From sequence record MW879340.1: 64,000 nt of DNA; one strand, given 5' to 3'. Shown piece by piece: positions 6,130 to 8,430 of this stretch; positions within the stretch are counted from its first letter, which is position 1; the number at the start of each line of letters is the position of its first letter. The notes below the pieces were generated by a model. That model had not been told where the DNA came from and made no database searches. It was given only the letters and a program-made list of their open reading frames with translations. Made by a program: the position numbers and the translations under genes.

Positions 6130-8430
6130 ATGACACAGGAATTACGTAGTTACGAACGTTTGTCGCCGGAACTGTCACTGCTGGATCAACGCATCAGCGT
6201 AGATACCACCAACGATGGGCTGATCACTGACTACCTGGTCACCGGTGCACGTGGCTGGGATTGGCTGTGCCAGCTTTACCCCGGTGCGATGCTCCTTGAT
6301 CAGGAGAACATGGTTAACCATCGTTTAGCCGCGGATGATCTGATTGAATACCCGTCCATCATCCAGGTGTTCTCCACCACGGAAGGCGATAAGGCCAATT
6401 ATTACTTCCTCACCATTGAACTGGGTGAAGATGCAGACGCTATTGTTGCCGGTATCGAAAAACGCCTCAAAGCACCAAACGTCATCATCGACGAGTTCCC
6501 GTTTTACTTCAAACACACCTTGAAGCTTGATATCCCGGCTACGTGTGAAAACCCTGAAGCTTATCTGCGTGAGGTTGTTGAAACCTTCTGTATGGCCAGC
6601 AATATGGATAAGGCACGTGTTGGTGTGAGCCTTAACATCGTAACGGATGAAGTCCGTGCGAAGCTGATAGAAGACGTTAAGGACATCAATATCCTTGGCG
6701 GGTATCCGATCATCCATCGTGACACAAATCTGGATGTGAAAGCGCAATATCCTGAAACGTACACACTGGCCAACACAACAGCCGAACGTCTTGTTATTGA
6801 GGTTGAGACCGATTGCGAGAATCCGGAAGAAACCATTTCACGTGCAATCGATTTGTTCTGTGAAAAACACCCATCAATGTCCGCGCTGATTCCTGGTCAT
6901 AAAGAACAGTGGATCAAACGCATCATGGATTGTCGTTTCTTCGAAGATCTCAAAGTCGACGGCGGTACGTTAGACTATCCTGTTGATGAGCTGCTGGCAA
7001 TGGATCCTCCAAAGCGCGGTTGCCTTAAAAACTTCCTGGTCTGTGACGACCCGGCTTATTTAAATAACGGAGAGAAAGAAGTGGCTGATCTTAACAAAGC
7101 ACCGAAAGTTGAACTCAGTGAAAGCATCGCATGCCCTAAAGTAAAATACGAAGGCATTCGTGACACTGACGTTGTTGCGGTTGACATGGTGGCTGAATAC
7201 ACCCCGTTCATCCGTAAGTGGGCCGAAGACCGTAACATCATCGGTGGTGGTTCTACCACGCTGGACCAGTTTATCAAAGGTCTGACCGAAGCTGGCGAGC
7301 TCTGGACTCACATTGGTAAAGGTCAGCGTGAACTCATTCAGGACGACCTGGGTGATGTGTATGTGTGCCTGGTCAATGCCGCGGGTAACTTCGACATCAA
7401 ACTCGAAGAGCACATCCGTCCACTGACACCGTACAACATCCACAGCGGTCGTCAGCTGTATCAGCGTCGCGGCCTGAAGCGTTACAGCCTGCAAGTGCTG
7501 TACGGGTTGGCTGCGGTGTCTCAGTCTATTGAGAACGTGCTGGAAGCCGACAACGAACGTGATGTCGAGTTCTTCAAGACCGACTTCTGCGAGGCGTGTG
7601 CCGATGTGGTGTATGCACTGGAAACCATTGCCCTGGAACACGGTTGGTCATTGTCTGACTGCGTGATTGCGGCGTACGAAGATATTCGTGATAGAAAGGG
7701 ATTGATGGTCAACGGTACGTTTATCAAAGAGAAAGACTTCACCGGTGAAATGGTAAAAGCCGCTCTGGACGACGAACGTGTCAAAGACGAAACCAAGGTC
7801 TATCTGCGTGAATGGCTGCTGAAACAAGCTGGGCCGATTGGCGGTGCTTTAGCAACAGAGTCAACCGGTGACGAACCTGTGCCGGAGTTCTGGAAAGCAT
7901 GGAACGACGCCACCGGCAATGTTCGCAACGAAGCACCGTACGAATTGACTGAACAAGCCATTGCATTATCTAATAAACGCACCGGCGATCAGTTTACTAC
8001 TGTACTGGGTCTGTTCGGTAAACCAAACCACAACGGCGATGTATTCGTTATCACGCATGAGATGTTGAAAAGCAGCTTGGATACGCTGAAGGGTCGTTTG
8101 ATCGGTGAGTTTGGTAATCCAGTCGTAGACGGTAATGATCACGTCCAGATCATGCAGCGTCTAAACCTCACTCTGGTTGACAACGCGGTCGGCACTCTGG
8201 TCGACTACGCTATCAATGATCTGGGTGATGATAGTGTCGGGTCGGTCTTCGAAGTGGTTGGTTTGATCGAGCCTTCAAAACAGCTGAAGTCGCGCGTGTA
8301 TGCCGGTGAAGGCGGTCACTTCGGTATTCGCGCGATCACAAGTGTGGGAACTGACAACATGCAGTATAAGCATGTGGCTGCGCTTCTTGCTTTCGACCTC
8401 CACGTTAAAAATCCGCGGGAGATGAAATGA
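6130..8430 (+). CDS. multidomain protein: MazG-like nucleotide pyrophosphohydrolase domain plus C-terminal prohead-protease-like domain
   Basis: KWAEDRNII..QFIKGLTEAGEL..DDLGDVYVCLVN and AYEDIRDRKGLMVNGTFIKEKD are typical of phage MazG-like proteins; C-terminal NHNG..GEFGNP..FGIRAIT..AFDL follows the prohead protease motif order. Confidence 0.8.
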   Translation: MTQELRSYERLSPELSLLDQRISVDTTNDGLITDYLVTGARGWDWLCQLYPGAMLLDQENMVNHRLAADDLIEYPSIIQVFSTTEGDKANYYFLTIELGEDADAIVAGIEKRLKAPNVIIDEFPFYFKHTLKLDIPATCENPEAYLREVVETFCMASNMDKARVGVSLNIVTDEVRAKLIEDVKDINILGGYPIIHRDTNLDVKAQYPETYTLANTTAERLVIEVETDCENPEETISRAIDLFCEKHPSMSALIPGHKEQWIKRIMDCRFFEDLKVDGGTLDYPVDELLAMDPPKRGCLKNFLVCDDPAYLNNGEKEVADLNKAPKVELSESIACPKVKYEGIRDTDVVAVDMVAEYTPFIRKWAEDRNIIGGGSTTLDQFIKGLTEAGELWTHIGKGQRELIQDDLGDVYVCLVNAAGNFDIKLEEHIRPLTPYNIHSGRQLYQRRGLKRYSLQVLYGLAAVSQSIENVLEADNERDVEFFKTDFCEACADVVYALETIALEHGWSLSDCVIAAYEDIRDRKGLMVNGTFIKEKDFTGEMVKAALDDERVKDETKVYLREWLLKQAGPIGGALATESTGDEPVPEFWKAWNDATGNVRNEAPYELTEQAIALSNKRTGDQFTTVLGLFGKPNHNGDVFVITHEMLKSSLDTLKGRLIGEFGNPVVDGNDHVQIMQRLNLTLVDNAVGTLVDYAINDLGDDSVGSVFEVVGLIEPSKQLKSRVYAGEGGHFGIRAITSVGTDNMQYKHVAALLAFDLHVKNPREMK

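Follow-up and report, generated by a model that had tools for sequence, protein, structure and literature searches.

A predicted nucleotide pyrophosphohydrolase of Erwinia jumbo phages carries a C-terminal prohead-protease paralogue lacking the catalytic serine and histidine

All-alpha NTP pyrophosphohydrolases bind metal through an E-x-x-E motif that is followed, about 12-28 residues further on, by E/D-x-x-D. MazG (1VMG, 2YXH and 3CRA), HisE and the dimeric dUTPases (5MYD, 1W2Y and 2YAY) have in common a helical-bundle core with the E-x-x-E ... D/E-x-x-D signature, and the same core and signature are found in the protein described here. The minimal MazG unit comprises about 85 residues, and in phages a MazG-like protein may stand alone, as does gp102 of Ea35-70, which occupies the same syntenic position as the gene analysed in this work.

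The prohead proteases of families S80 (PF20034; phiKZ gp175 and SPN3US gp245) and S77 (T4 gp21) are stand-alone enzymes characterised by the motifs P-N-x-N-G, G-E, F-x-x-R and F/W-D, the last of which includes the catalytic Asp, and by an auto-cleaved C-terminal tail that is thought to target them to the prohead. Diverged paralogues of these proteases were described in jumbo phages in 2017, namely SPN3US gp117, 201phi2-1 gp206 and PhiPA3 gp143 (Ali et al., PMC5694885). They are second copies of 136-161 aa, lacking both the C-terminal tail and an aligned His, and are encoded away from the real protease (PMC5694885). The domain reported here resembles them in being a tail-less and His-less copy of the protease, but it is built into an enzyme of 766 aa as its C-terminal portion, while the earlier paralogues stand alone. 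No description of a prohead-protease paralogue fused to a MazG-like enzyme was found in the literature; the fusion of a pseudo-protease to a pyrophosphatase is real and apparently undescribed so far.

The fusion gene and its locus

The analysed window, a stretch of 64,000 nucleotides from record MW879340.1, originates from the Erwinia jumbo phage pEa_SNUABM_48 / pEa_SNUABM_37. The first-pass annotation of this DNA had proposed that a single 766-aa open reading frame joins a duplicated N-terminal unit, a MazG-like core and a dead protease-like domain. The frame coincides exactly with the coding sequence pEaSNUABM48_00081 (Table 1), whose product is 100% identical in pEa_SNUABM_48 and pEa_SNUABM_37. 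Its ATG lies 2 nt behind the stop codon of the upstream gene, and its 3' end, with the stop codon, runs 4 nt into the start of the downstream gene. The synteny of the locus holds across MazG-like forms with and without the protease-like domain. The neighbours are small co-directional genes adjoining an NAD-dependent DNA ligase, and the block of head genes containing the real protease is located far away. Scans for promoters and terminators flanking the gene gave results below chance expectation, and no RNA run containing the gene was found.

Table 1. Coordinates of the fusion gene, its parts and its immediate neighbours in the window
Feature	Residues	Position	Strand	Remarks
Upstream gene, phrog_11500	229 aa	5438..6127	+	Synteny with MazG-like gene in all lineages examined
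pEaSNUABM48_00081, whole multidomain gene	766 aa	6130..8430	+	ATG start; annotated "hypothetical"
N-terminal alpha/beta domain	1-115	6130..6474	+	About 44% identity among orthologues
Repeat unit 1, core	130-157	6517..6600	+	Strand, C-E-N-P, helix
Repeat unit 2, core	220-247	6787..6870	+	Diverged copy of unit 1
Linker	291-349	7000..7176	+	Low confidence, pLDDT < 50
All-alpha NTP pyrophosphohydrolase core, MazG-like / dimeric-dUTPase-like	350-560	7177..7809	+	PHROG and structural matches
Acidic metal-ligand motifs	E387-A-G-E390, D405-D406-L-G-D409	7288..7356	+	Invariant in 18/18 family members
Linker	561-616	7810..7977	+	Conserved F-W..W..A.G motif; helix packing onto C-terminal domain
C-terminal non-catalytic prohead-protease (Peptidase S80 / T4 gp21) fold	617-763	7978..8418	+	Fold and sequence homology
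Catalytic-His position (gp245 H77)	Asn663	8116..8118	+	GEFGNP here, GEEDHP in gp245
Catalytic-Ser position (gp245 S153)	Gly732	8323..8325	+	FGIRA here, FSLRA in gp245
Catalytic-Asp position (gp245 D178)	Asp756	8395..8397	+	Retained; position nearly invariant in family
Downstream gene, phrog_12807	124 aa	8427..8801	+	Synteny with MazG-like gene, C-terminal domain present or absent

Searches of Pfam, PHROG and the ESM Atlas with the N-terminal 340 residues were uninformative, the ESM Atlas scores (about 0.70) lying below the level of shuffled proteins, and the alpha/beta domain at the very N-terminus has no match in Pfam, PHROG or PDB. The duplication that had been noticed behind this domain is real but short: the two halves align in BLASTP with an E-value of 2e-4 over 24 aa, and a profile of unit 1 aligned to unit 2 by hhalign gives a probability of 91.5% (E 8e-7, 28 columns). 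The orthologues contain one or two copies of the repeat. A copy matching unit 2 is present only in P0006, the second copy in P0014 being a different one, of the unit-1 type. The linker between the repeats and the enzyme core is probably flexible, judging from the model.

The pyrophosphohydrolase core

The core is the best-conserved part of the protein, with a mean identity of 76% to the orthologues, and it is 37% identical to the stand-alone 215-aa MazG-like protein of Ea35-70. PHROG MazG-like families match residues 341-553 with E-values of 5e-36, 4e-29 and 1e-18, and structural matches cover residues 350-539; the MazG-like stretch assigned at first sight to positions 7198-7737 (residues 357-536) falls within both. 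The dimeric dUTPases 5MYD, 1W2Y and 2YAY are matched with Z-scores of 10.4, 10.1 and 9.4 over 144-154 residues, although a Z of about 10 is within the background range quoted by the search tool for helical folds, and the same high background applies to the MazG and HisE entries, which score between 7.1 and 8.9, the highest value belonging to MazG 1VMG. According to these matches the core, with its approximately 190 residues and a large helical insertion, spans the full length of a dimeric dUTPase and resembles these enzymes more fully than it does minimal MazG.

Conventional sequence searches are less revealing. The Pfam MazG match to residues 386-426 is weak, scoring 12.6-14.2 bits where the cut-off is 22, so that the protein, which also differs from MazG, HisE and the dimeric dUTPases in having extra N- and C-terminal domains, falls below the threshold of that family. 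The core has no match in NCBIfam, and neither phmmer of the full protein nor a profile of the family alignment found a solved MazG or dUTPase among the PDB sequences. The acidic metal ligands of MazG, on whose presence the original assignment depended, are all in place, E387, E390, D405, D406 and D409 being invariant in the 18-sequence alignment. The product of gene 00081 is a predicted phage nucleotide pyrophosphohydrolase that belongs to the all-alpha (MazG / dimeric-dUTPase) superfamily and has its metal-binding acidic residues intact. Its core has probably kept the ability to split a (d)NTP between the alpha and beta phosphates, and dUTP or another dNTP would be the likeliest substrate.

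The C-terminal protease-like domain

The relationship of the C-terminal domain to prohead proteases, which the first-pass annotation had recognised from short motifs, is supported by both fold and sequence homology. An AlphaFold model of the domain, built from 20 diverse sequences, has a pLDDT of 91.7. In a search of 48,161 chains its single outstanding match was T4 gp21 (5JBL_A; Z 10.4, rmsd 2.8 A, 127 of 165 residues), the next-best structure being the VZV protease (Z 4.9) at the head of the weaker matches, which are led by herpesvirus proteases. The full-length model recovers 5JBL as well (Z 9.2), and the possibility that the domain does not match the prohead-protease fold was checked and is not borne out by these models. 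The 5JBL, dUTPase and MazG structures came only from the Foldseek-independent VIA search: Foldseek did not recover 5JBL from PDB with the domain model and returned nothing significant or meaningful from PDB and AFDB Swiss-Prot with the full model, and a profile of the domain alignment found nothing relevant among PDB sequences.

At the sequence level, Pfam Peptidase_S80 (PF20034) is matched by 14 of the 18 family members, most of them above the gathering score (best E 1.3e-9; 28.7 bits for the SA002 member, with a cut-off of 23.4), the window protein itself having no Pfam S80 match. The family HMM matches the SPN3US protease gp245 (E 4.5e-17) and, with an E-value of 4e-16, the phage's own protease, an intact S80 enzyme encoded outside the window by gene 00176 (Pfam S80 E 5.7e-78). 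Direct comparison of the domain with the latter by BLASTP gives an E-value of 5e-5. In the course of evolution, and within a conserved three-gene cassette, the enzyme has acquired an N-terminal region and, at its C-terminus, a paralogue of the S80 prohead protease that the phage itself encodes.

Catalytic residues were assigned by alignment to gp245, in which they are H77, S153 and D178 (PMC5694885). The domain keeps P-N-x-N-G, G-E, the Arg following the former Ser, and the Asp, but unlike the S80 and S77 proteases it has neither the Ser nucleophile nor the His base. The motifs GEFGNP and FGIRA start at 8104 and 8320, as originally read. The proposed replacement of His by Asn in the former is borne out by alignment to both gp245 and the gene 00176 protease. 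The proposed replacement of serines by Gly and Ala in the latter holds for Gly732 only, since the Ala behind it has no counterpart among the catalytic residues and is also present in active gp245. Among 36 aligned relatives the Ser position is occupied by Gly or Ala in every case, and the His position by N, S, T, Q, F, Y, C, K or A, with His solely in Moabite gp135; the E, R and D positions are nearly invariant. These substitutions suggest that the domain is incapable of peptide cleavage.

It might be supposed that the domain remains a protease whose catalytic set is unconventional, such as the retained Asp together with the conserved Glu, since hardly any variation is seen near the former active site in Asp756, Glu660 of the G-E motif and Arg734. 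This is extremely improbable: no other conserved Ser, Cys or Thr can be made out that would replace the nucleophile missing from all members, and a complete S80 protease is already present in the genome.

The domain also differs from the prohead proteases in its surroundings, being placed behind an enzyme and encoded outside the head-gene block, and in its end, the protein stopping 10 residues past Asp756, while true proteases run about 75-85 residues further. These features bear on the proposal that it serves as a capsid-packaging tag, the dead domain joining the prohead core or the true protease during assembly, in the manner of its active paralogue, so that the pyrophosphatase would be packaged, ejected with the DNA and able to act on host nucleotides early in infection. 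The enzyme of which the domain is a paralogue resides in the prohead, the domain is joined to differing cargo (MazG-like proteins and DUF1653), and the heads of such jumbo phages contain many enzymes and ejection proteins (PMC5694885, PMC7411985). However, it lacks the tail of about 75 residues that was inferred to target gp245 into the prohead (Ali et al., PMC5694885), its gene lies beside the DNA ligase and distant from the head genes, and no virion proteome containing the pEaSNUABM48_00081 protein or a relative was found, all of which makes packaging an unlikely role.

Distribution and possible role of the pseudo-protease module

The protease-like domain is modular and apparently still under selection. 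It stands alone in proteins of 145-170 aa, is joined to MazG-like cores in other lineages and is also found fused to DUF1653; in one genome, an HNH endonuclease has inserted between the domain and the MazG gene. Over their whole length, Moabite gp135, Eowyn gp303 and an ORF of KpHz_2 align to the domain, and no MazG-HMM match was found near the stand-alone paralogues in Eowyn, Moabite, KpHz_2 and P0036. The "capsid maturation protease" label attached to related stand-alone proteins such as Moabite gp135 is probably wrong. SPN3US gp117 was not recovered by the family HMM and therefore represents a more distant branch; one Ser of gp117 was aligned with the catalytic Ser (PMC5694885), in contrast to the Gly of the family described here. 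Only two proteins were recovered when the word-indexed database was searched with a profile. P0033 and P0035, which came from the exhaustive search, proved to be spurious matches to cadherin-like repeat proteins and were discarded.

Orthologues P0017 and P0018 are missing the protease-like domain, which indicates that the enzyme can work without it. Where present, the domain shows 40% identity among orthologues, compared with 76% for the core, and so evolves about twice as fast. The domain could be a decaying relic, a functionless fragment of a duplicated protease gene that became attached by chance; the loss of the catalytic residues, the freely variable His position and the absence of the domain from some orthologues would fit, and the gp117 paralogue has been discussed as the possible outcome of a damaging event in a protease gene (Ali et al., PMC5694885). 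This explanation appears quite improbable nevertheless, as the frame has stayed open in 14 orthologues that share just 30-51% identity, there is little or no variation at the E, R, D, G and F positions, the AlphaFold prediction from 20 diverse sequences is very confident, the domain has survived as an ORF of its own where an endonuclease has split the gene, and it recurs across several architectures.

The retention of residues around the former groove, despite the loss of nucleophile and base, together with the faster evolution of the accessory domain relative to the core, would be compatible with a role in counter-defence. Prohead proteases, T4 gp21 among them, have recently been reported to set off CBASS when they cleave a loop of the CD-NTase (PMC12991175), and since protease activity is reported to have this effect, an inactive look-alike becomes a timely candidate for a part in regulation or counter-defence. 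The dead protease could act as a decoy that binds host baits without cutting them, for example the CD-NTase activation loops of CBASS, or that sequesters the true protease until it is inside the prohead, while the pyrophosphatase would remove substrate or signal nucleotides and so destroy those needed for immune signalling. Both this decoy and the two-pronged counter-defence that it would form are very improbable. The argument is purely inferential, neither sequence nor context tying the gene to a defence system; the NTPs cleaved by MazG-type enzymes are linear, and the family has no established activity on cyclic oligonucleotides; and relaxed constraint predicts faster evolution equally well.

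The most likely role of the C-terminal domain, considering its conserved non-catalytic residues and its promiscuous fusions, is in binding or assembly, and the binding, scaffold or packaging module imagined by the first-pass annotation was a reasonable idea in this respect. The protein as a whole is best explained as a pyrophosphohydrolase with an intact core to which a dead S80 paralogue has been added as a non-catalytic binding or assembly module, an interpretation considered probable, if by no means certain. The C-terminal domain would then act as a protein- or peptide-binding or self-association module, and may position, assemble or regulate the pyrophosphatase.

One branch of the prohead-protease paralogues has uniformly lost its nucleophile, yet is predicted to be well folded and is conserved, and it behaves as a mobile module that occurs alone, with DUF1653 or with MazG-like enzymes. 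In a clade of phages with genomes of about 290 kb this pseudo-protease has been welded to a highly conserved nucleotide pyrophosphatase. Should the decoy proposal be true, it would provide the first function for the prohead-protease paralogues of jumbo phages. The fusion offers the first clue tying jumbo-phage pseudo-proteases to nucleotide metabolism, and represents a defined construct with which their binding to protease substrates, to the protease or to the prohead may be probed.

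Organisation of the gene 00081 protein

The 766-aa reading frame recognised in the first-pass annotation is present as gene pEaSNUABM48_00081 of the Erwinia jumbo phage pEa_SNUABM_48. It belongs to a run of tightly packed genes with the same orientation, and an NAD-dependent DNA ligase gene lies 1.5 kb upstream of it; "hypothetical protein" is the label on every CDS seen in this record. The 2.3-kb gene stretch is 100% identical in pEa_SNUABM_48 and pEa_SNUABM_37, two Erwinia amylovora phages with circular records of about 294 kb each. The metagenomic contig L013 has, at the matching relative position, a homologue of the DUF1190-family protein encoded nearby.

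Locations of the genes, protein segments and related loci discussed (window coordinate = record coordinate - 62,000)
Feature	Location	Strand	Description
NAD-dependent DNA ligase	window:2631-4586		full-length, LigA-type; PHROG E 5e-183; record label hypothetical
phrog_11500	window:5438-6127		upstream flanking gene, 229 aa; function unassigned in PHROG
pEaSNUABM48_00081	window:6130-8430	+	ORF, 766 aa; record label "hypothetical protein"
Strand-C-E-N-P-helix unit 1	aa 130-157		gene 00081 protein
Strand-C-E-N-P-helix unit 2	aa 220-247		gene 00081 protein
phrog_12807	window:8427-8801		downstream flanking gene, 124 aa; function unassigned in PHROG
DUF1190-family protein	window:9772-10356		glycine- and serine-rich tail; Pfam E 3e-40
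Gene 00176	record 147,724-148,506 (L010:21724-22506), outside window		complete S80 protease, 260 aa; Pfam Peptidase_S80 E 5.7e-78
SPN3US gp235	L007:972-1913		313 aa; hypothetical
Ea35-70 gene 090	L003:161-757		198 aa; hypothetical
Moabite gp135	L005:4001-4441		146 aa; Serratia phage
P0034	L011:407-1543		378 aa; single sequence on 2.5-kb contig
Split orthologue	L013:5001-8303		metagenomic jumbo-phage contig

The N-terminal region comprises a predicted alpha/beta domain (aa 1-115) and two strand-C-E-N-P-helix units, whose homology (BLASTP E 2e-4; hhalign probability 91.5%, E 8e-7) bears out the duplication noticed at first reading. Family, PDB and Atlas searches of this region gave no explanatory match.

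PHROG families of MazG-like pyrophosphatases cover aa 341-553 (E 5e-36, 4e-29 and 1e-18), and the Pfam MazG model, which matches weakly (12.6-14.2 bits, cut-off 22), aligns exactly to aa 386-426, containing the acidic motifs. PDB sequence searches with the protein gave no match. The mean pLDDT of the full-length AlphaFold model is 70, the core reaching about 80-90. In a structural search independent of Foldseek, aa 350-539 matched dimeric dUTPases best (5MYD, Z 10.4 over 144 residues; 1W2Y, 10.1; 2YAY, 9.4), followed by MazG 1VMG (8.9) and then further MazG and HisE entries; since the background of this tool is high for helical folds, it is the coherent hit list and not Z alone that argues for the assignment. 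None of the 18 aligned family members departs from E387, E390, D405, D406 or D409, a pattern consistent with the E-x-x-E ... D/E-x-x-D metal-ligand signature of the all-alpha NTP pyrophosphohydrolase superfamily. The MazG-like core proposed earlier is present, with its acidic residues in place, and we infer that it is an active (d)NTP pyrophosphatase. The stand-alone MazG-like protein of phage Ea35-70 (215 aa) is 37% identical to it. SPN3US gp235 is also hit by the MazG-core HMM (E 5e-18) and has the acidic motifs intact, but its N-terminal extension is of another kind and it lacks a protease-like domain.

A prohead-protease fold with lost catalytic residues

The C-terminal domain (aa 600-766), modelled alone with 20 diverse homologues, gave a confident AlphaFold structure (pLDDT 91.7, pTM 0.86). 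Among 48,161 PDB representatives its single outstanding match was the T4 gp21 prohead protease (5JBL; Z 10.4, rmsd 2.8 A over 127/165 residues), also recovered with the full-length model (Z 9.2); the next-ranked, weaker matches were the herpesvirus proteases of VZV (4.9), HCMV (3.6) and KSHV (2.7). A Foldseek search missed 5JBL. At the sequence level, Pfam Peptidase_S80 is matched by 14 of the 18 family members (best 1.3e-9), the orthologue in phage SA002 scoring 28.7 bits, above the gathering score, and the domain-family HMM identifies SPN3US gp245, an experimentally validated protease, as a homologue (E 4.5e-17). These results vindicate the prohead-protease-like domain of the first-pass annotation.

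The catalytic triad of gp245 consists of H77, S153 and D178 (Ali et al. 2017, PMC5694885). In concordant HMM and BLASTP alignments these residues face Asn663 (G-E-F-G-N-P), Gly732 (F-G-I-R-A) and Asp756 (A-F-D-L), respectively. The His-to-Asn replacement therefore stands as first proposed; as to the serines reported lost in FGIRA, Gly732 does occupy the catalytic position, but the following Ala does not. The Ser position holds Gly or Ala in 36/36 aligned relatives and the His position N, S, T, Q, F, Y, C, K or A, with His in Moabite gp135 alone, while the Glu of G-E, the Arg and the Asp hardly vary; in the alignment's two true proteases the triad reads H, S and D. The domain has lost Ser and His and retains Asp and the neighbouring motifs.

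The phage encodes a separate protease, gene 00176, with His, Ser and Asp intact, annotated only as a hypothetical protein and located within a block of large virion and RNA-polymerase-sized genes. It is related to the C-terminal domain of gene 00081 (BLASTP E 5e-5, 26% identity over 160 residues), and a six-frame census covering the entire genome turned up no further S80-like domain and a single MazG-like core. Packaging of the gene 00081 protein into the head, a role open to a prohead-protease relative, is made less likely by the lack of a C-terminal tail on this domain and by the non-structural gene neighbourhood.

Modular distribution and evolution of the locus

When 1.84 billion representatives were searched exhaustively with HMMER, only 22 clusters were retrieved at E of 0.001 or better, two of them spurious (repeat proteins). 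The protease-like domain is distributed modularly: in full-length orthologues, with MazG but without the N-terminal region (proteins P0022 and P0034), with DUF1653 (P0023), with a C-terminal extension (P0021), and as stand-alone proteins of 145-170 aa. Among jumbo phages in GenBank, Eowyn, KpHz_2/KpGz_1 and the Moabite group have stand-alone copies. Moabite gp135, with relatives in BUCT660 and Yaphecito, is annotated as "capsid maturation protease" from an HHpred match of 81% to 5JBL; Gly occupies its Ser position, although the His is kept, and this label is probably wrong. BUCT660 and Yaphecito have a separate full-length S80 protease; Moabite was not among the matches listed.

The first-described diverged prohead-protease paralogues were SPN3US gp117 and its relatives (136-161 aa; Ali et al. 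2017, PMC5694885); gp117 is too distant to be matched by the C-terminal domain HMM. In the distant fusion P0034 both domains may be catalytically dead, because the MazG acidic positions E..E and D-D..D are replaced by S..K and K-E..G. Ea35-70 gene 090, 5 kb upstream of the stand-alone MazG-like gene, matches the pseudo-protease HMM weakly (E 2.8e-4), carries an F-G-V-R + Y-D motif, and may be a further diverged paralogue.

Both flanking genes adjoin the MazG-like gene in Ea35-70, L015 and L013, and SA002 shares the upstream one. The gene between them encodes MazG alone in Ea35-70 and the N-terminal region plus MazG in L015; with such constant flanks, the extra domains were therefore gained in place. 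The conserved three-gene cassette may be a functional unit. In contigs L013 and L014 the orthologue is split by a ~0.8-kb insert, whose reading frame resembles an HNH homing endonuclease, into a 540-aa N-terminal-MazG protein and a 281-aa protein comprising a duplicated MazG tail, a linker and the protease-like domain (PF20034). The core is the best-conserved part of the protein (mean identity to orthologues 76%, against 40% for the C-terminal domain, 44% for the N-terminal domain and 26% for the repeat); judged by these identities, the accessory parts are faster-evolving.

The structural interpretation of the first-pass annotation, a MazG-like core joined to a catalytically dead prohead-protease domain, is correct, and no literature on such a fusion was found; the protein is a novel architecture joining two known families. 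The dead domain might also, though with low probability, be a decoy in protease-sensing immunity, a reading prompted only by the CBASS activation by prohead proteases reported in 2026 (PMC12991175); simple oligomerisation through it is possible. The reading we favour is that this domain would act as a binding or assembly module, in a protein whose pyrophosphatase core would act on (d)NTPs.
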